Below, in pieces: positions 199-46,308 of a stretch of 64,000 bases of DNA. The stretch is from assembly GCA_020536535.1 (NCBI GenBank), contig JAHLWZ010000663.1, positions 1-64,000 on the forward strand, written 5' to 3'. Origin of the DNA: Pelomyxa schiedti (lineage: Eukaryota > Protista > Evosea). The stretch's first letter is position 1. Every line of letters starts with the position of its first letter. The position numbers and the translations under genes were made by a program. The notes beneath the pieces are model-generated. The model searched no databases and had not been told where the DNA came from. It saw only the letters and a list, made by a program, of their open reading frames with translations.

Positions 199-999
199 AT
201 ATACGAAGGGGATGGATGAGATGATACTTGTGATATGATGTACTTGCAAAATTGGCTTTGGTGGTGCCTATTTAAATGTAAGTATTAGACTAAGATAAGA
301 AAGAAGACACTTAGCTTTGTGCCAAGTTAATTTAATTTTATTGAGGATAACTTGTGGCAAACCTATAACAACTAAGGGTCGAAGCCAAAAATACAGTAGA
401 GATCTAGGTAGCTCTAAACAACGAGAAAGGAAAACTTGAACGAGAGTACAAAAGGATGATCTTGTGGTGCTTAAACAAGGGAAAAAAAAACTTTCAAAAA
501 ATGAAGAGCAAAGAACACGGGGACACATTGCAGTCATTAGCAATACTTACCGATGTTTTCTGTCTGTTCTTGTGTCGTGTGGCCCGGCCCGAGATCCGGC
601 CTTTGTTTATTTTTTCGAGTTAGTTTGGCGGGGTAATTGCAAATTGGGAACTTTTTCGTTTTCCCCCAGAATATACAGTGTGGGGTTGTTATTGACCTGC
701 CCGGGTGCCGACTGTTGTTGCGGTTGTTGACCAACAGAATAACTTGTTGTGTTGAAGTCCAGTCCTAATCTCAGTCTCGGATCTGGAAGACCCCGAATAG
801 CATCAAAGCACATAAAAGGAAAGAACGACGTATGTGGTGCGCCGATTGCGTCTTGTTAGTGTGCGATTGACGATGATACTGGCACATGTCCATGCCCGTC
901 GGTTTTGGATGGGTTCGGAGTAATATTTCGTACCAAGAGACACTCATATTAATTTATTTGGCGTCTTCGGCATTCCGTGGGTTTTTTTCTTCTGATGTT

Positions 1000-1967
1000 A
1001 TGAACAACAGCCGCGATGCAACAGTTGGGTGGGGTCCTCAGAAGGTTCCCTCCTACTGACACATCACAGCTGTCTCCACGACATATTTCATGTTGCTAAG
1101 GAAATGTTGGTCCCAGTTGCTAAAACGTGGGGAGACCAGGTCTCATCACCTAACGTCTGGTACGTTTTTCTTCAATCAAACTGACAGTTCCTCGCAAATC
1201 AAACCGCTGGAACTTTGTGGACCAGTGCCAGGTGCTTGAGGACATCTCAGGCACTCAATGTTCCAAGCACAGTAACTGCAGTTACTGTGCACTCTGCACC
1301 AGAACACCTATCGGTTGGCATTTTAGGCGAACCCTTCGGTGTCACGTGACTTTATGCCCTTTCAGCCAAGCATCGCTCTGCCCCGCACCTCCTCCTCACT
1401 CAAGTTCTGTCTGAGCCACTTCCAAATCCTATTGTGTTGGATGTACAAATTCCTCAGTACCATTCATTTACTTAGCAAGTAGGGGCATATGGTATTTCTA
1501 TTGGCGCCTCCCAAACACAACCAACACAGTATTCCTATTGAGTCGATGGAGAAAATCCTCGACCGAGGAACTATGCGACAAAAAGTGACTTTCCGCTGAT
1601 GCCACATCGTTCTGCTCATCGTGATTACCTCCAATGAAAAGATGGCTGAAGTTGCACAGAGCTTATTTGTTCAAGGACTTACCCACCAACACCACGGGGT
1701 ATCAATGAACATCCTACAGTTGCAAACTTTCATCGATTGACTTTGGCGAGGCGTCATCCACGGGGGGCAACCCAGGGACCATGCCACCTGAGCTCAGCAG
1801 TTTCCTCTGCATATGAGAACATCCCGCTGAACCTCTTGGGAGCCTCAAAGTGCGACTTGTTTGCATTTGCCCTCTCCTTCTGGGACACACTTCTGGTGCC
1901 GCCCAAGCTCCCAATGGAATTGGAACCACAACATGAGTCAGTGCAACACCCTCTCACTGCTCCGTGA
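1000..1967 (+). CDS. possible multi-exon hypothetical protein
   Basis: Short open stretches separated by GT...AG segments (e.g. gtacgt...ctgacag near 1161-1188). No recognisable domain and exon structure unresolved. Confidence 0.25.
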
Positions 1968-2143
1968 TTTCCCAGCCGAGATTCCAAATGCTCCATTTTA
2001 CGCTTCCAAAGCCCCAATTGGAGAAAATCACGAAATTGCGTCGACTACTCAAAATCTTGATAAGAACCAACTTCCCTCTGGAAATCAGATAGGATTTGGC
2101 AACATGCCAACATATGTTTAAATAGTTTTTTCTTTTGGTTTGT

Positions 2144-3747
2144 TTAAGAAACCCAAGGCAGAACACTGCCAAAGAGGAAATGCTGAACAACGGGAAATTT
2201 AGTCATGACATCAATTTCATACTTCCTTTGCATGCCCACATTCACCTTTCGCCAAGAAACAGTGGCGCTAATGTTATAGAGGTCCGGTGAGTGTTCATGA
2301 AACGGTGCCTTTTTGTGCTGCAAAAAAAAAAAAAAAAAAGGTTAAACGGACCATACCGTAACCCACACCCCAAAAGGGAAAAAGAAGAGGGCATACATCA
2401 GTAATATATTTGATGCAAGCGAAATACAGATAATCCTGGCAGTTACGAGAAACTAGAGCTGGAGACAGTACCGATCCGGGGTCCAAGTTGGGGTGGTCTG
2501 TTGTTGGAATGAATTAAATGAAAACCTTGAAATGCCACTTCACCCACCAACTAACTGAGCTGCACCCCATATGAATGGAAGGAATTGGTAATCATCCAAG
2601 CCCCATACTCCGTGAGACCCAGCGGGTTCCAGCTTGTACCGTTGCTGCAGCTTGCGTACAACATCCAGATAGCGGATAAACACGCGCAATACAATGGCAC
2701 GGTAGTCGGCAGGCCCAAAAAATCCTGTAGCAACAAGAACATATAGCCAAGCTAAAAACGCAAGTTCGTGTCCTGTGCCATAGTCGATGCGAGTTTCATT
2801 CCCGAAACTACACACAGTGAATGGACGAAGGACAGGCAGGGTAGTAAAATGTATGAAACCTCTCAGTGAAGTAGGGCACCAATTCTATAACAGCGTTTTG
2901 TAGAGTCGCAGGAAGGAAAGCTCTGTGAAGCGCGGCTGCAGTCTAAGTTGGAGTTCAGGGAAAGAAAGAATAAACGGGAATGGAATAACCTGTTTCAATT
3001 TTTCATGCCAAATCCTAAACGCTTTATTGCCAAATCTGCATTGCTCCTTGAGTGGCTCGATTTCGTCTGCCCATCTTGAAAGTTCGTCAAGCAAGTCAAG
3101 TACAGCTTGTGCAGCCTAAGAAGGGTCAACTCAGTAAGGCTACGGGGAATCGGGAAAGACTGACAGTCACGGACCGGGCTAACAGTGCACTTGGTGGTAG
3201 TGGTGGGAATCATCAAAACGCTATCGTTGAGGCACCTAATGAAAGCCATCAACTGCAGGAGTTTGGGAGTTAAACCACGACTCTCTTACATGGATGCATT
3301 CAATAATAATAATTTCACAACAAAGACATCTCATAAAGTATGATGGGGAGGAAAAAAAAAAAAAAACCCAACGGTAACAACACAGTAAAGAGAACACAAA
3401 ACCTGGTCGTGTGTCCGTGACTTTGCGAACAAAGTTACGTCGTGTGCCGTAGTGATATGCTTGGTGGGAGTCACGAACGTGTGCCGCGACCAGTCGTAGA
3501 TCTCGGTGCCCTGGCTTGTGTTTAATTCCGCGTTTCGCGGTCTCGCGGTCTCGGTTGCCGTTGCGGCACTAGTCGAGGTAGCCCGTGCGGGATCTGCGTG
3601 CGGCTGTGCATTCGTGTGACTAGTTGATGCAGTTGTAGTCTTAGTCGTAGATGCCGGTGCCTCAGTTGTCTTTGCAGATGCCGCAGATGTAGTTGTTGCA
3701 GCGTTTGGCACCGCTGTTGCGGCCTGAGCCGGTACCTCCGTAGACAT
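2144..3747 (-). CDS. PTPA: PP2A phosphatase activator (PTPA/RRD family), spliced
   Basis: Exons give [69 protein letters not shown] and [32 protein letters not shown] at 3747, TAA at 2144. Long Thr/Ala-rich N-terminal extension. Confidence 0.95.
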
Positions 3748-33867: not shown

Positions 33868-35535
33868 ATGGACGACGTGCGTGCTATGTTGGACGACCTA
33901 ATGGGACGAGATCGCAATAGACTGGTGCGTCAAAACCGTCGTTAATGTTATTCTCCCCGTTTTTTTCCCGTTTTTCTTTTTTTTTTTTTTTTGCAACCTC
34001 TAACAATGGTGCCCGTAGCCTAACGAGAGAACTCGTCGTGGTGTCCACTTTTATGATCCTCATGTTTGCAAGTATTATATTTGCGGTTTTTGTCCAAATG
34101 AGCTGTTTACAAACACAAAGAGCGACCTTGGTGCCTATTCCCTCTCTTTTGCACCGTTAGCTAGTCTTTATCTATCTTCAACGAAGCTATTTTTTTTTTA
34201 TTCCTAACATCACGCACCTTGCGCTTCACCCTATTACATATAATCAAATAATTTCTTTCTGTTGCTGACTCAGCACATTTATGGTATCCTCTTCTTGCCC
34301 TTAACACCAATAAACAACCATTCTTTCATCCTGCTTGTACCCTTCATTCCCAAACTGACCAGGTCCTTGTTCCGGTGTGCATGACGACGGATGTAGAACT
34401 GAGTGTGTAACTCAAATCATGGTAGAAACCCGTTTTAGATACTAATACTCTCACTCTCCCCCAATTCAACCTGCTTCATTCCTTTTATCTGGATCTCTAT
34501 TCGACTCGCCCTTGGCTGCCACTTTTTTCTGCTTTCGTGTTTGTTTTCTTTTCTGTGCCCCTGTTAGATTTATGAAACTCTCCCTGGAGGCCAAAAAGAA
34601 GTATGGCTATGAAGTAGACTTTACCAGACACCTAGAGCGGCTGGTTAATGATCTGGATAGGAAGTAATCTGCCTGTAGTTAGTGTCTCTTTCTCTAACAC
34701 AGTGTAGAATTAAAAAAGGATTAGAGAGGTTGGAACACCAAGATGACAGAGTAGACCTCTCACAATTGCCACCTGAAACTCAGATACGAATAAATGAGAT
34801 CACCCAACACATTCAAGAATTAGTAAATAAGGTAAGTAATCTTACTACTGGAACATTCTGATTTGTAATTACAGGTGGAAGCTCTAGGGGAGGAGGGTAA
34901 AGTCGAAGAAGCACAAGCAATGATGGTAGTAATTGACCAACAAAAGAAAGAGAAAGAACAACTAATTCAGGTTAGTACACGTGAAACTCCAGTTTCTCAT
35001 TCATTTTCCCAAGACATATACTCAAGAGAAGAGAATGAAAGTGTGTGAAGTTTGTGGAGCATTTCTGGTGATAGGGGACACCGAGAAGAGGACACAGTCC
35101 CACCTTGAGGGCAAGCAGCATTGTGGGTACCAAAAGATAAGAGACTGGGTCCATGAGTGGAACAAGGTAAGAGTAAGCCCCCACTCTCCCCGTACTGCTC
35201 ACACAACACCGAAAAAAAACCAGAACCGCTCTGGTGGTGGAGAAGCTGCGTCGTCGTCAACAAGCAGCACTAGCACTACTAGCACCACCACTGCCCCCAC
35301 TGCTGGCTCTTCTTCTTCTTCTTCTTCTTCTTCTTCTTCTTCTTTGGCCACGCACCATCCCCACTCCCACTCACATTCCCAATCCCGCTCCCGCTCTCGA
35401 TCCCGCGACCGTGACCGTGATCACCACCGGGATACTACACACAGGAGGGACCACCATGATCACAGAGACAGAGGCCGACACCGCCGTGAGAGGTCGAGGT
35501 CACACTCTCGCTCTGCATCACCAAGGAAACACTGA
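33868..35535 (+). CDS. LUC7: U1 snRNP-associated splicing factor LUC7, spliced
   Basis: MDDVRAMLDDLMG, VCKYYICGFCPNELFTNTKSDLGPC..VHD (ZnF1), MKVCEVCGAFL..DTEKRTQSHLEGKQHCGY (ZnF2) and an RS/RD-rich tail. Confidence 0.96.
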
Positions 35536-36039
35536 AGCCCAGAACAAAGAAACTAATTCAACCTCTTTCTTCTTTTTTTTTTTTTTTTTTCAAAAAGAAA
35601 TGGTGGGTGTCATATCCATACATGACATTGTTGAAGTAGGTTGCTCATACATGGACAAATCTGTGTCATCCAGTCATTTCATTGCTCACCAATTAATCCC
35701 CTTCCACTTTGTCAGTCCGCCGGTCTCATAATGTTGAACTTTATAGACCCATGCCCCTTATTCATCATAGTGTTGAACACAGTACGAGTGAAGTGAGCTT
35801 TGATCGAAATGGGACGTTGTACTGGACGTGAACTCCGAATATCGAGAACAACCCAAACAAGTTTGCCTTGACTTACACATTACCACTGTTCTAATTTTTC
35901 AAAAGCCTCTGGAAAGCAAATTCCCCAACCCTTGATATCCTTACTACTTCGATTGAGTGAAGAAGGAAGTTTAATTTTTTTTAAAAGGTGCAATTCAGTG
36001 TCTTCGTCTTCTGGAGTAATCTTGCTAGAGGGTTTATTC

Positions 36040-39000
36040 TTAGTTCGTTTTAAAAGTTAGACTAATTGTGTAGGGAGTGGAACACTTACCTCCGAATGTA
36101 ATTTCTTTTCTTTGTGTAGTAGGGGGATATCTTCCTTTGGCTGGTTTGGCATGTGACTTGGTGGTAGATGTAAGAACTGGTCGGTCCCCAACTGCTACCT
36201 CATCAATTATGCTGGGGAGAATTTCTTTGGTTTTGGCTGGATGTCTCGCAGAAATTATATCGGCCGAATATACTTCTCTCTGCTCACAAAACTCAAGCAT
36301 TGTGGCTTGGAATGAAGCCACGTCAGCCAGAGCCTCATTGGTGAAAACAAGTGAACAAACTTGTTCAACAGTCGGAAGTGCGGCACTGGATTTGGTTGTT
36401 GTTTTTGTGGTAGTTGAAGCTGTATTTACAGTTTTGGAGAGGGCTGAAACATTGGCTGAATGAATGTCAAAGAGGATGGCTTCAATTGCTTTTGTGGTAC
36501 CAGAAAAGAAATTAATTGCTTCCTCCATTGAAGAGGGGGCACATAACCAGTCACAGTGTGGATGCGGGAAGAACATAATGGCACCACATATTAGCATTGC
36601 TTGTTTGGCAGAGGGTCGCCGGAAGTTCTCACGTTCCAGGAGGTGGGGAATAAGGGCACTGGCCCAGGAGGAACTCTGAAACTGTGGAGGAACTACAAAG
36701 GGAGGTTTGGTGGTGGAAGAAATAAATTCAATATCAATGGGTTGATTTGCTCTTGCATAAGGATGCTGTCCACATATGGCTTCAAACAGCACACATCCCA
36801 CTGCCCAAACGTCATTTTTGCCAAGCTGATACTTGCGCTGTGAATATATCTGACCCGAGATTTTAGGCTGAGGTACTGAATGAAATAGCTCTGGTGCACG
36901 GTTTGACTGGTTTCCATCCATACACTCACCTTCATTCAGTAAAATGAAGTCTTCTCCATCAGGGCAACGAATTGAGGTGCCCATATCACAGAGAACCCAG
37001 GAGCTCCCACTGACATTAGGCCTGTTCATAAGAAGAACATTATCAATCTTGATGTCACAATGGAACCAGCCATGTGAATTTAGGTTGTAGCATGCACAAA
37101 GCAAGCAAAAAGCAAGTTGGAGCAGTCCGATTTGTGTATGTGCCCCAGAGAGTGGGTTTCCTCCATCAAGAGGTAGTGGTTTGCGTGGGAACCTGCCAAA
37201 CTTATCAGATAGTCTGGAGTCCAGCGTGCACTGCCCAAGCTCAATTGTGAGAAATGTAGTGCGTTTGAAAATTGGGATGGCATCATAGTCAGTAGATCCC
37301 TCAACCCAGCGGCGTGCATCGTCAACAAGCGCATATTTTGGTCGTAATTCTGAAGGGACAAGGTTGAGTTGAGTATCCCCTCTGAAGTAATTGTAGATGT
37401 TAGCAAGGCACCAGTGAGGATGCATAAACCCCACTTCGCACTCTCTGTCAAACCAGTCCTTTTGGTGCTTTGTCCTCTCCCCAGCAGAGAAATTAAACAT
37501 CATTTTCAGTGCAACTGTTGTTGGCTGTGTAGAAGAACGAATGGCAGCTGACCGTAAATCAACTTTGTGAACACTTCCATTACACCCTTTCCCAATAGTT
37601 ACTGCTGTAGATGTTTCAAGGCTCTCGAGTTCAACCAATCCCATTCTTCCCTTCTCGAAGTGGCAAATTTCTGCTTGCAAATTCTTTCCTGTTGTGAGAA
37701 GTAATTGTCTCTTTATCTCCACGACTTCATCCATCTGTGCACTTTCCACTTGTGTTCCCTTCCCAGTGGCTCCTCGGGTAGTTGTAGATGAAACTCTGTT
37801 TTTTTGAGGCACTGGATTTTTCCTTGTCTTAGTTGTTGTGGACTTTTTCAACACCACTTTTTGGCGTGGTGGGTCTTCCTGCACTTGTGTTCTGTGAGTT
37901 TGTGTGAGAGTGGGGCTTTCCACTAGTTTTCCATTGAATTCATTTGAGAGCTCTGGTTCCGATTCATGTACAGTGAGGAGATTCCAGTTATTGTTAAGGG
38001 ATTGGCATCCTCTCTCACTGTACTCCGCCTTGCTCAATTTCCAGTTATCAAAATGACCTGGTAATGAACCAAGTATAGACCCTCCAAGCCACACTGCATG
38101 TTGTCGCCCTTCATTACTCAGAACTCGAACATTGACTGTTGATGAAGAAATATGGGATATCTCTTTTTGCAAGCGGGTGGCTAGGCCAGTGAACATTGAT
38201 GAACCTCCAGATAGGGCAATATTGTTGGCAAGGTCTTGTTGTGAATTTACAATTGACTTCCAGCAAAGTGCCTGGATACTCAAGTCTGCACCCATTCCAA
38301 TTAGTTCAGGATAAAATAATGCCTCAGTGGCTCTGTGGTTCTCACTGTAAATATGAAATTTAGCACCATCAGGAAGTGTGACAAGTTGGTTTGGTTGACC
38401 AAGACTTTTTCTTGCTTCAAGGTCAGGGTCACTGGCCACATAGCAAACCCTCTCTTTAATTCCTTCATATGCATGTGCCCACTGTTCTGTAATTGCTGAA
38501 CCTTTTGTCAAAAATGAACTTGGTCTCTGGTGTATCAGGTCCTCCAATCTTTTATTGATGCTCTTCCCTGCATTGCAACACTTAAATGTAGCACGTGGAA
38601 AATAGTTACCATCCACAATTGGAACAATCTGAGTGAATCCATATCCCATCTCCACACAAAGACCAGAGGCCATAGCTGACGAAAAGAGTGCAAGAGGTCC
38701 TTGGGGCCATACCAACAGTGATGGTATAGTAAATGTCTCAAATGCCATCTCAGCTTTCCTCTCTCTATCTTTAAGTGGAGACAGGTGCGGTTCTGGCAAA
38801 AATAGTCGAGTTTCCTCTGGGACTATTTTGAGCAAGTCATAGAAAGTGTGGTGCCAAAGGTGCTCCAGATCCCAACTTATATCAACTCGTTCTGAGCTTG
38901 GAATAGGCCGTACCACTTTATCAAACTGAAGAGCTTGATTACCATAAGCTACTGAATCATACCACTCACTGCGAGAGTTAGAATTTCTTTTCTGTCCAAT

Positions 39001-39314
39001 AAGAGTCTTTAACAAAAATAATAAAGTGAACCGTAAGTATGAAAGTAAACCAACAACAACAGCAGCCACCATACCACACATATTAAACTATCTATCGTCA
39101 AGCACAAAGTACAAACCGGGAACACCAAAGAAGGTACGTCATCTCCCGCAAATCCAACCTTTGTGTAACCACTCCCATTGTCCATTACAACAATTAAATT
39201 TTGATCCCCTCCAGTACTCAATGGTTCTTCTGTAGTAGTGGTACTAGTACTTGTAGTCACGACAGAGGATGACTTCCGAGCTGACATTATCCTCCTCTCC
39301 ATTTCGGAAAACAT
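36040..39314 (-). CDS. actin-related domain fused to a PINK1-like protein kinase domain; 2 exons
   Basis: Exon 1 ends IVVMDNGSGYTKVGFAGDDVPSLVFP. After one intron (gtttgt...ttaaag) a single exon of about 2.97 kb carries the actin motifs (FETF, LSGGSSMF, AVWLGGSIL, SKAEYSERG) and then the kinase motifs IGKGCNG, VALKMMFN, HCDIKIDN, DMG, RAPEL and DVWAVG. Confidence 0.9.
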
Positions 39315-39842
39315 CTTGTCCAATGTACCCTCCTCCGCAGAACCAGACCGTCGCGACGAAAACGAAAAAGGAAAATAATGCAGTTCCGGTCCTTTGATTT
39401 TAGTCTGGTCTGGACCAGTTCGAGAAAAGTGCAGCTCGGATTTTCTCGCTAGAAACCAGCAGCTCCAGAACAACAACACCACCACCACCTCCAAAATGCC
39501 GATTGGTCAGGGGTCATGTTCAGCCGCTTTTTGATATTGTTCGTTCCAGGCTTTCTACAGTCAATTCCCCACTCTGCAGCGAGAGTCTCTGCTATAGTAG
39601 ATTGAACACCCGCTGCACACTCCTGCCTATTGTCACCACTCACTGGCCTCTGTTCTACACCATGCTTGATGTTACGTTTGATGACGGTCTATGTAAACAT
39701 TGCAAGGGACTTACGCACAAGTTTGGGAATGTTTGCATGCACTGCTTGCTTCCAGAAGGAGATTCGCTACTGGAGACTCGGGATCACACACAACCTATCT
39801 TGTCATGCAACGTTTTTTTTGAGTGATTGGGCCAAAGGCAGT

Positions 39843-43578: not shown

Positions 43579-46308
43579 ATGACGACGAGCACGGCAATCA
43601 ACCCCCAAATGGTACCCAGTCCCTACTTTTTTTTATTTGTGTTTTCGAACAACTGGCCCCCAGTCTAGCCACACACTCGTCCCTAGATTCACAGTGAACA
43701 AACACAACTCTCTTTTGTGTCAAACCTAAATTTCTATGATGTGGGTTCAGGCTACTTCTCCAAGTGCCTCGCCTGACACTGCTACGAATCCTACTACCAC
43801 TACAACAACAACAACCCCTCCAAGTGCAACTACTGCTGATGCGAGCTGTTGTGAAAATGCCAGCTCAACGGGAGCAACGTCGTCATCAACAGGGGGAGGT
43901 GTTGATGACCAACAACAGAAACAACAGCAAGTGGCGGCGAGTGATGAGAAGCCTGTGAATCACGATAGCTGTGACTGCTGTGGGGGTGGGGGCCAGTTGG
44001 TGTGCTGTGACAAGTGCCCGTCTTCCTACCACATCGAGTGCGTGCTCCCGCCAACTACTTTCGACGAACTCCATGAGTGGTGGTACTGCAGGGCCTGCTT
44101 ACCTTCTGTCACTAATGCTCATGCTCACGCTCATGCAAATGACAATGCCAATGCTACTGCAGTTGAGGCTGCTTTTTGGAATTTCTTTTTTTCCCCCCCC
44201 CCCCCCCTATTTGAAACAAAACCTCACCCTATCTTTCTGAAAAAAGACACGCAATTACAGTTTGGGTGACATTCTCACAAATAAGATGAAGACTATGAAT
44301 CCTACTATTTACACTCTCCCCAAGATAGTGTCACAAGGTTTGTATCTAGCGAACAACAATGGGAAAAAATTACAGACTCTCACAGATGCAGGAGCACAAC
44401 ACAATCTCAGAAAGCGTCAAGTAATTTCTGAATGCTCACCAATTACCAACTTATTCAACTGCCATTAGCAAGTCAAAGAGACCATTTGTAAGTATTGTGA
44501 GGCTTCTGGCGGTCTCCAAGCCCGCTGTAATTTATGCAACCGTTTTTATCACTTGCGTTGTCTTGATCCGCCACTTTCATATGTGCCTGACTATTTCGAA
44601 TGTGATAGACACTACAGAGATGGGCTACCTGAATCAGCTTTCTCTGTGTGCTGTTTCTTCTGGTACTCTGCGATTGATCAATACCTAGAGGCGACCTGAT
44701 CCATATGACTACGTTTCCAATGGTGCTGTTAAAATTGACTTCAATGGCGACAGCATCCCTGTACCAATGACGCAAGTACAATGCTGCACTCATATGTTGG
44801 TTGAAGAGTGATCTGAGAAATAACACAGGATGGCAAAGTGTGGGAGTGCAAAAGACCACGCATTGGGGATGTATCACAAGCTGAAAAGCAGCCAATTCTT
44901 AATGATACTATTGTTAAGTATAAAAACATTTCAGAAACGCCAAAAAGTAACCTTGAAACTATAGAACGTAAGTTTACCCCTACAAAGCGATGTCATTCTG
45001 TCAACAAGGTCGGCCACAGCAATGGCACCTCTTTTTGCACAATTTTTTGCATGGCAGAAACTTGAAACAGTATTTACCCTTTCTTACCCTTATTTTTATG
45101 TTGGGTTCGTAATGGGGTATTGTGCCATAGGTGAATGCTGAAATGAATGCTTTACGAGCCAGGGCCTCATCAGATACTCATGGTGGTTCCTCTGAAAGTG
45201 GAGCCACCAAAACTCCAGCAGCGGACCTACGTTCAGAAGTTATGAATAAGCATATACAAACCATGGCTCCCAAACGTATTGTAGAGATACGTATGTTTCT
45301 GTCAAAAGTTTGGTCCCTGAACATTAACACAGTAAATTAGCGGCAACGTATCTTGCTCAGATGGGCCGGGCCAGACCTGCATCTACAGAGAATACTACTT
45401 CAAGGTTAGTAGCAATGAGGGAAGCAACCCTTAAAATTTTCCAGCAGAGCCAAGTCAAAGAGACAGACACGGTACCGAAAGGAAAAGTACCTGCCCTCCA
45501 CTATTGCCCCTTTAAATCTAACGTGGACATTGCGTGCCATACAGTGACGAATTCATGCAGAATATTATCGCCAGTGAGGTGGCGCAAGATAAAAAGGCTC
45601 AAGTGAAGGGTTGTGCGTTGCATTGCAACTGTTACCTCTTACGTATGTGGGACAACTGAAAGTTTAGGTTCCCGCCGGAAAAAAACAAGGGCTGCCCCCA
45701 CCCCAGTGTCTCAGGCTCCTCCAATTCCAGCGTATACACATGCACCACCTCCACCAGCAGCATCCCCGCCTATACAGGAACAAGAAGGTTCTGTAACTCC
45801 TATATTAATTCATTCTTACAGAGTCCGCAGCTCCCCCAGAACCACTAGTAATAAAAATACTGACTCCTGCTGAAAACGAAAGATATTGCTACCTTGCTTC
45901 AGAAGGTCTTATCCAATAGATATTCCCAGGCTAACGTAACAGGCCACAGATAATCAAGTACTATTCCGCATACACAAGTCCCCAGTGGTGATTGGCCGAT
46001 CCGGAAAGGGTGCAGACCCCGATTTCAACCTTGGGCAGCACACTGTATCCCGCTCTATCAGCCACGCACATGCATGGATTACCTTTTCCACCCCAAACAC
46101 ACAGTTCCGGATCAAAAACTCAGGCCGGAACGGCACCCTACTTCACAGAAGAGGCCCCGCTGGCACCACAGACACCTACGCACTCACTGACCCCCATAAT
46201 GGTGCAGAAATGGACCTGCTCCCTGGTGATGTACTGGAAATAGGCCATTTCCGGTTTTACTTCATCCAACCCTATAACTACACTCCTCCCACAGTCTCCA
46301 CTGGCTAA
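43579..46308 (+). CDS. PHF12: PHF12-like chromatin reader (PHD-PHD-FHA), spliced
   Basis: PHD1 NHDSCDCCGGGGQLVCCDKCPSSYHIEC..WYCRAC; PHD2 CKYC..CNLCNRFYHLRCLDPPL..CDRH; FHA VIGRSG..SISHAHA..NSGRNGT..GDVLEIG. Confidence 0.8.

Follow-up and report, generated by a model that had tools for sequence, protein, structure and literature searches.

To our knowledge, the protein kinase PINK1 has been studied almost only as the single-copy sensor of mitochondrial damage in animals. PINK1 phosphorylates ubiquitin at Ser65 as well as ubiquitin-like (Ubl) domains. Coupling of a kinase to actin is known from Yersinia YopO/YpkA, a kinase that is activated by a bound actin monomer and uses this monomer as bait for actin regulators. 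In the Dictyostelium actinome, the protein filactin consists of a long N-terminal extension followed by a C-terminal, nearly conventional actin (PMC2441452). Here, we describe a gene of the anaerobic amoeba Pelomyxa schiedti that encodes an actin-like domain followed by a PINK1-type kinase. The gene is located on the minus strand of contig JAHLWZ010000663.1 (GenBank assembly GCA_020536535.1); positions 1 to 64,000 of this contig were analyzed and are referred to as the window.

An earlier reading of this region, made from the letters of the DNA (the sequence-only reading), had proposed that a single reading frame encodes an actin-related domain, a K/T-rich linker of about 130 aa and a kinase resembling PINK1. 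The fusion is real: on the public protein, Pfam detects Actin (4.9e-72, covering positions 2-403 of the 410-position profile) and Pkinase (4e-15), and all motifs that this reading quoted are present at the positions given below. The gene contains three exons (39314/39302-39117, 39006-36090 and 36038-36034), and its product of ~1035 aa contains, from the N- to the C-terminus, an actin-like domain, an 81-aa linker rich in T, K and N, and a complete PINK1-type module, consisting of an N-terminal helix, a kinase domain with an Ins3-like insertion and a C-terminal helical extension. The proposal of a single frame holds for exon 2 (36090-39006; 2.9 kb), which encodes in one frame the remainder of the actin-like domain, the linker, the entire kinase module and a C-terminal tail, and which lies within a minus-strand open frame of 1013 codons (36040-39081). 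However, the P1 loop of the actin-like domain is encoded by a separate 5' exon beyond a 110-nt intron, and a second intron of 51 nt precedes the last codon.

Both splice junctions can be read from the DNA. At the 5' junction, GTGTTCCCG is followed by gtttgt ... ttaaag and then by ACTCTT, joining ..SLVFP in phase to TLIGQKRN..; intron 1 (39007-39116) is a phase 0 intron of the GT..AG type located after ..VFP. At the 3' junction, ..ACATTCGGAG is followed by gtaagt ... ctaag and then by AATAA, and intron 2 (36039-36089) is likewise of the GT..AG type; exon 3 (36034-36038) provides the rest of the final Glu codon and the TAA stop. Exon 1 (39117-39314) contains ATGs at 39314 and 39302 and encodes an S/T-rich N-terminus and the P1 loop, of which the sequence DNGSGYTKVGFAGDDVPSLVFP is held by a second minus-strand frame (39009-39494). 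The corresponding GenBank protein of P. schiedti (P0001, 1035 aa) is 100% identical to the long open frame. Its gene model contains both introns, with translation beginning at the second ATG (39302), and the precomputed Pfam families on this protein are Actin and Pkinase. The product name of the record, “actin beta/gamma 1”, hides the kinase. Full-length protein analyses of the fusion refer to this public record; elsewhere, references are exon-wise.

Judged by its sequence and predicted fold, the kinase part of the fusion is a complete PINK1-type module with intact catalytic residues. The kinase domain (36610-37656; aa 513-861) contains, besides VALK, the Gly loop IGKGCNGSV (37570-37596), the kinase motif VALKMMFNFSAGE (37477-37515), the catalytic loop HCDIKIDN (37039-37062), CDMGTS (36973-36990), NRAPEL (36886-36903) and KNDVWAVG (36796-36819). 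The catalytic set, including the Glu of alphaC, is intact, and K563 (the Lys of the VAIK motif), HCDIKIDN, DMG (PINK1 has DFG) and APE are invariant or nearly so across 22-38 relatives. When all PDB chains were searched with phmmer, the six best matches were insect PINK1 chains (1.5e-7 to 2.5e-6), followed by NIK (8.5e-5) and MAP2K7 (~1e-4); for a metagenomic relative (P0028), the values were 2.4e-13 for PINK1 versus 4.7e-9 for the next family. The PINK1 side of the phmmer alignment reads IAKGCNAVV / LAVKMMFNY and GN..MAPE / KSDLWAVG, and the wording IGKGCNG, (V/L)A(L/I)KMMFN, GN..(R/M)APE and K(N/S)D(V/I)WA.G is common to the fusion and PINK1. The resemblance to PINK1 that the sequence-only reading had noted is therefore borne out by sequence, and also by fold and tree, as follows.

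An AlphaFold2 model of aa 468-977, built with 38 relatives, was obtained with high confidence (predicted local distance difference test, pLDDT, 88.9; predicted template modelling score, pTM, 0.91). In this model, an N-terminal helix of 30 residues is followed by the kinase and, at the C-terminus, by a helical bundle; the helices lie at model residues 12-42 and 395-509. The top 24 chains in a Foldseek search with this model were all PINK1 (8e-16 to 2e-11; ~420-530 alignment columns), whereas non-PINK1 kinases were found at ~1e-10 with ~350 columns. Similarly, VIA-align gave Z scores of 25.9-29.1 over 357-388 residues for PINK1 (327-336 residues for two shorter chains) versus at most 25.5 over 265-290 residues for other kinases. 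The aligned span, model residues 17..507 with residues 115..574 of Pediculus PINK1, runs from the N-terminal helix through the end of the C-terminal extension. The PINK1 structures used for comparison, from insects and human, were 6EQI, 7T4K, 7MP8, 5OAT and 9EIH.

The features that set PINK1 apart from other kinases in these comparisons can be located on the fusion as follows. The N-terminal helix (37666-37758; aa 479-509) aligns with that of PINK1, which packs on the C-terminal extension, and the model of the fusion kinase predicts the same packing. The C-terminal helical extension (36265-36609; aa 862-976) carries the family motif PTVEQVCSLVFTNEAL and aligns with the PINK1 extension; in the alignment, its last helix is common to the fusion kinase and the metazoan PINK1 P0138. 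An insertion of ~37 residues is present between beta4 and beta5 (37264-37374; ~aa 607-643), at the position that, from published PINK1 structures, we take to be that of Ins3. Its LVPSELRP aligns with ALPERLNP of P0138, and an LPxxLxP-type motif in this insert is thus a likeness to PINK1. As for the linker (37759-38001; aa 398-478; rich in T, K, N and S), the sequence-only reading was right about its presence but overestimated its length: it spans ~81 aa, because the next ~30 residues are the helix of the kinase module. The kinase model has low confidence in its first residues, to which the C-terminal end of the linker corresponds.

The fusion also differs from PINK1. The long inserts of P0138 before the VAIK strand and after helix C, Ins1 and Ins2, are represented by 0 or few residues in the aligned Pelomyxa proteins. 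Neither a mitochondrial targeting sequence nor a transmembrane anchor was found at the N-terminus, which consists of the S/T-rich stretch and then the actin-like domain. In addition, the organelles of Pelomyxa are anaerobic and mitochondrion-related, and its genome contains at least 44 copies of the kinase family, as opposed to a single PINK1.

This copy number comes from a genome search with the kinase module at E <= 1e-10, and the 44 matches are a lower bound. PINK1-like kinases form tandem arrays on three contigs. The kinase modules of the paralogs are 40-57% identical to that of the fusion and share its N-terminal helix and C-terminal motif. The paralogs have the same general layout, in which a variable N-terminal domain is followed by a coiled coil or linker and then the kinase. 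The N-terminal partners include Sel1, FKBP, MSP, ankyrin, LRR, ARM, coiled coil, a second kinase and Ubl. Of the members found, only the fusion has an actin fold at its N-terminus; in place of the coiled coil that many paralogs contain, its linker is of low complexity.

A search of 1.84 billion representative proteins with a profile built from 22 paralogs gave 39 proteins with values below 1e-30. Among the matches looked up, the best were Pelomyxa proteins, followed by environmental eukaryotic proteins and one protein of the metamonad Paratrimastix. True PINK1s (Haliotis P0111 and P0138) were within the best 150 matches. Trees were constructed with FastTree for 139 domains (Shimodaira–Hasegawa, SH, -like support) and with IQ-TREE under LG+C20 for 56 domains (SH-like approximate likelihood ratio test, SH-aLRT); the outgroup consisted only of other high-scoring matches of the same profile. 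One branch, with support values of 96 (139 rows) and 100 (56 rows), separates PINK1, a malawimonad sequence, the environmental family and the Pelomyxa family from 81 or 21 further kinases, respectively, so that the kinase groups with PINK1 and not with the other best-scoring kinases. The Pelomyxa sequences form a monophyletic family (95-96), whose sister is the environmental-protist family (95-99). Together these two families (99) are the sister group of the metazoan PINK1 clade (99) and are not nested inside it. The PINK1 label given by the sequence-only reading is confirmed, in the sense of a sister family and not of an ortholog. The best match in Mastigamoeba was considered as a further member of the family and rejected, as it falls outside the PINK1-like group in the trees.

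Several relatives deserve separate mention. The Pelomyxa protein P0107 (KAH3759533.1, 1016 aa), named “PTEN induced putative kinase 1” in GenBank, contains an ordinary kinase domain (249-461) as well as a second, PINK1-like kinase domain (near 686-907), and forms a long branch within the PINK1-like group. Relatives of the family outside Amoebozoa likewise have swapped N-terminal parts: the Paratrimastix pyriformis protein P0032 (KAJ4457529.1, 1496 aa), from an anaerobic metamonad, is named ankyrin 2 in its source, and the environmental protein P0042 (771 aa) has, by eye, an RCC1-like repeat region. One paralog (C1163:7285-11661, ~363-2895, plus strand) apparently has the order Ubl, coiled coil and PINK1-like kinase. 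Upstream of its kinase exon, at a distance of ~900 bp and on the same strand, is a ubiquitin-family match (49.5 bits; profile positions 29-70); the N-terminal piece of the Ubl domain is in an adjacent frame, and the coiled-coil exon lies in between. A PINK1-type kinase with its own Ubl domain is notable because such domains are substrates of PINK1. At a different locus (C291:67702-70926), an open reading frame (ORF) at 1183-1965 on the plus strand encodes a Cys-rich protein with a Parkin RING0-type match (zf-RING_12; above the cut-off both in the genome search, with 30.7 bits, and in the ORF, with 27.8 bits). This ORF is followed by another exon rich in Cys and His (2042-2215), and a second, weaker match is present on contig C451. 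From these matches, it is possible that the C291 locus encodes a Parkin-like ligase in an anaerobic amoeba.

The actin-like domain (38002-39206, spanning intron 1; aa 33-397 of the GenBank model) contains the P1 loop DNGSGYTKVG (39153-39182), the P2 loop EMGYGFT (38632-38652) and the adenosine motif LSGGSSMF (38191-38214). The Pelomyxa genome contains at least 74 actin-family matches, among which ~20 conventional copies score equally. The fused domain is ~35-38% identical to conventional actin, and the genome search revealed no closer paralog. Intron 1 is located at the same position as the intron after ..AVFP (codon 32, between ..AVFP and SIVGRPRH) in all 11 resident conventional actin genes sampled. 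Because the intron position is shared, the actin module is, on this genomic evidence, derived from a resident actin gene by duplication at the DNA level. The domain that the sequence-only reading called actin-related is a diverged actin. Identity as an actin-related protein (Arp) was rejected, because the 60 top-ranking PDB sequences and the 50 top-ranking structural matches are without exception conventional actins and because the intron is one that the resident actin genes also have. The AlphaFold2 model of the actin part superimposes on conventional actins with a Z score of 41 and a root mean square deviation of ~2 A over ~330 residues; subdomains 1, 3 and 4 are modelled with confidence, and aa 65-107 (subdomain 2) have a pLDDT below 50.

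In comparison with conventional actin, the P1 loop, Gln137, Lys213/Glu214 and GGSSMF of the adenine pocket are kept. The P2 loop has changed from DTGDGVTH, which includes Asp154, Asp157 and His161, to EMGYGFTQ, and Lys336 is replaced by Gln and His73 by Glu. The D-loop has been replaced, and the C-terminal 11 residues are unrelated to actin. The identities of subdomains 1 to 4 are 45, 14, 36 and 35%, respectively, and 50 of the 74 columns that are at least 95% conserved in 40 other actin domains are kept; the 24 changed columns are mainly in subdomain 2. The degeneration of subdomain 2, which belongs to the pointed face, and of the residues for hydrolysis argues against ordinary co-polymerization and ordinary ATP turnover, and according to sequence and model, the domain is probably a diverged, non-polymerizing copy of actin. 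A second actin fusion is encoded on another P. schiedti contig: P0008 (889 aa) has a B-box zinc finger, a long middle region and a C-terminal actin (Pfam 5.5e-86), and its GenBank name is also “actin beta/gamma 1”.

Expression was analyzed by comparing the window with the Logan contigs of one study, which consists of single-cell RNA-seq runs and a fourth run of unrecorded type. Contigs of the RNA runs fall at 36306-37580 in the kinase, at 37801-37981 in the linker and at 38096-38354 in the actin part. The 36038^36090 splice is present in one RNA contig, and therefore a processed minus-strand RNA exists. The fourth run contains the entire gene in a single 4.2-kb contig. Since the frame is unbroken across the actin part, linker and kinase, these regions would be present on a single transcript. 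A contig of the fourth run and one RNA contig differ from the window at 15 positions, reflecting two haplotypes or cells. The kinase contains two of these variants, both synonymous, and the actin part and linker contain none; the disordered C-terminal tail (36090-36262) contains eight, of which seven change a residue. Because the kinase variants are synonymous, the actin part is invariant and the tail changes mostly alter residues, the folded parts look as if they are under purifying selection, for what so small a sample can indicate. The second haplotype or cell also has small insertions within and beside the 3' intron (36039-36089). In view of the frame, the GenBank model, the contigs of the RNA runs and the fourth run, the splice and the variants, we rejected an artefact of gene model or assembly as the principal explanation.

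The explanation that we favour, with a probability of roughly 50% for the whole, is that this is an expressed actin-PINK1-type chimera in which the N-terminal module serves as the address of the kinase and putatively as bait for actin regulators. The sequence-only reading had suggested that the kinase might be tethered to, or regulated by, the actin system. The family comprises at least 44 members whose N-terminal modules are interchangeable, and the actin-like domain, being just one of these modules, is best seen, by analogy, as a docking or bait module that replaces the mitochondrial anchor of PINK1. The variable N-terminal part would take over the task of the import and anchor segment of PINK1 by setting where, or on what, the kinase accumulates. 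In the fusion, the non-polymerizing actin mimic would dock on actin-binding proteins or filament ends, and as a built-in bait it might present its partners to the kinase, in the way that YopO uses its bound actin monomer. Local crowding could then allow the PINK1-type helices to pair two kinases, which would activate each other, as is conceivable by analogy with PINK1. The paired kinases would phosphorylate nearby targets, either actin regulators or, as PINK1 does, ubiquitin or Ubl domains; the ubiquitin of Pelomyxa carries Ser65.

The structure of YopO (PDB 4CI6) is among the structural matches of the actin-part model. The two systems are alike in that a Ser/Thr kinase is coupled to one non-polymerizing actin unit that could present actin-binding proteins to the active site. 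They differ in that YopO is a bacterial effector that belongs to an unrelated family of kinases and binds host actin non-covalently, whereas the actin unit of the Pelomyxa protein is covalently attached, much diverged and known from its sequence. Filactin resembles the fusion as a larger multidomain amoebozoan protein that contains an actin domain; in contrast to filactin, the actin part of the Pelomyxa protein is N-terminal, 35% identical to actin and followed by a kinase.

Several results weigh against this explanation. The catalytic loop of the fusion kinase has HCD and not HRD, and Glu572 occupies the Lys+9 position, which we take to be that of the autophosphorylated Ser of PINK1 (human S228, Pediculus S202); paralogs have A, V, I, N or S there. 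Because of HCD and the Glu at this position, activation may differ from that of PINK1. Regarding the actin part, the residues at the C-terminus by which actin binds profilin have not been conserved, and the exit of the linker from the domain is beside the barbed-face cleft; therefore, many classical G-actin ligands may not bind. A predicted complex of the kinase module with ATP and Pelomyxa ubiquitin obtained a score of 0.00, which gives no verdict and weighs neither way on binding. No single Logan contig of the RNA runs extends from the actin part to the kinase. Finally, an ortholog of the fusion was found neither by a word search of 5.8 billion clustered proteins nor among the profile's best 150 matches of 1.84 billion.

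The last two results would also be expected if the gene had no dedicated function, being an accidental, lineage-specific chimera drifting to loss or two genes misread as one, and many fusions of this kind have been made by this genome. Nevertheless, the frame is free of stops for 988 codons across the actin part, the linker and the kinase; the splice sites of the two introns are proper, and splicing of one of them is seen in RNA; the catalytic residues and folds are intact, with high model confidence; and fold-defining residues are still kept after 65% of the identity to actin has been lost. Moreover, the variants in the kinase are synonymous, unlike most of those in the tail, and we regard absence of function as very unlikely. 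Alternatively, the actin-like domain might co-polymerize into filaments or cap them, and the kinase would then decorate F-actin directly. The well-folded subdomains 1, 3 and 4 of the model fit such a role, as do the hydrophobic plug and much of the barbed-face cleft, which are conserved or conservatively changed (Y143F; I345, L346 and L349 kept). However, the replaced D-loop, the low identity and confidence of subdomain 2 (14% identical), the Glu in place of His73, the 24 of 74 changed conserved positions and the fusion of the C-terminus to a long chain make this alternative quite unlikely. It is also conceivable, in line with the second suggestion of the sequence-only reading, that the actin fold binds ATP or ADP and docks on its own kinase in one of these states, so that kinase activity reports adenylate status. 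Nucleotide binding is plausible from the residues kept around the pocket, and hydrolysis could be slowed by the alterations of the P2 loop and of His161, which would suit a sensor; an archaeal cluster of Hsp70/MreB-type ATPase-kinases, the nearest neighbour by language model, provides a lead only. Yet an 81-aa low-complexity linker separates the two domains, and the same module occurs with unrelated N-terminal domains in the paralogs, which points to independent modules and not to a fitted intramolecular switch. We therefore consider a sensor of this type highly improbable.

A role in immunity was weighed as well. As an integrated decoy, the actin domain would lure toxins or effectors by which bacteria bind or modify actin. 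Binding or modification of this bait would switch on the kinase, which would mark the site, for instance through phosphorylation of ubiquitin, for cell-autonomous defence or symbiont control. Several intracellular prokaryotes live in Pelomyxa according to a published account (PMC10579272). The family is large and arranged in tandem, like many fast-evolving defence families, and sister genes contain domains of the types found in innate immune sensors (an RNI-type LRR named NLRC3-like, Sel1, ankyrin and ARM). In other organisms, actin domains are fused to NACHT, TIR and LRR modules, although these database entries may include gene-model errors. On the other hand, no line of evidence ties the fusion gene to microbes. 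A decoy would be expected to mimic actin closely, and the domain is 35% identical to actin, with the D-loop and subdomain 2, which matter for toxins, being the most degenerate. For these reasons, an immune decoy is doubtful. A broader version, in which the chimera is a wired bait, is unlikely: the actin mimic would recruit actin regulators, toxins or effectors of intracellular bacteria, the kinase would write a mark of phospho-ubiquitin or a similar kind, and the 44 or more kinases would together make up a modular system for sensing damage and invaders, of which the mitochondrial role of PINK1 in animals would be one surviving specialization.

The architecture of the fusion is not widespread, and its sequence was already public under a misleading name. 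A word-based search retrieved 49 long actin-domain proteins, of which only this one contains a kinase. The partners in this set include Sec23/24 trunk, vWA, WW, NACHT, TIR, LRR, ankyrin and TPR, some of the proteins are tandem actins, and some of the models may be artefacts. The public fusions of actin with NACHT (from the fungus Moniliophthora), TIR and LRR (P0174, P0192 and P0210) could be either real bait-type fusions or errors in gene models. A search of the ESM Atlas with language-model features returned generic kinase clusters and, as the nearest neighbour, the archaeal Hsp70/MreB-kinase cluster mentioned above (81 members). Its members resemble the fusion in that a single chain of ~1100 aa combines an actin-fold (ASKHA) ATPase with a protein kinase, and they are unlike it in that the ATPase is of the Hsp70/MreB type, the kinase is not PINK1-type and the hosts are archaea; the likeness is probably an analogy only. 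In the literature searched, which had partial coverage, no paper on the PINK1-like family or on an actin-kinase fusion was found, and the Pelomyxa genome paper does not mention such kinases. According to reviews, PINK1 is absent from the related amoeba Entamoeba (PMC9796589; both PINK1 and Parkin in the case of Entamoeba histolytica) and from an oxymonad (PMC6759080).

An anaerobic amoeba thus has dozens of copies of a complete PINK1 module, and relatives occur in Paratrimastix and environmental eukaryotes. Across these PINK1-type kinases, docking domains of many kinds would stand in for the mitochondrial anchor, and the actin fusion may be the clearest case in which the anchor has been swapped for a recognizable cellular “address”. 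The fusion bears on how PINK1 modules can be re-targeted, on ubiquitin-kinase activity in the family, and on the uses of the actin fold once it is freed from polymerization.

The genes flanking the fusion are ordinary nuclear genes. An exon at 34981-35535 of the window (plus strand) encodes a LUC7-type splicing factor (Pfam LUC7, 9.5e-20) with a tail rich in S, H, R and D, and a PHD-finger protein (1.6e-7) is encoded at 43736-44269, also on the plus strand.

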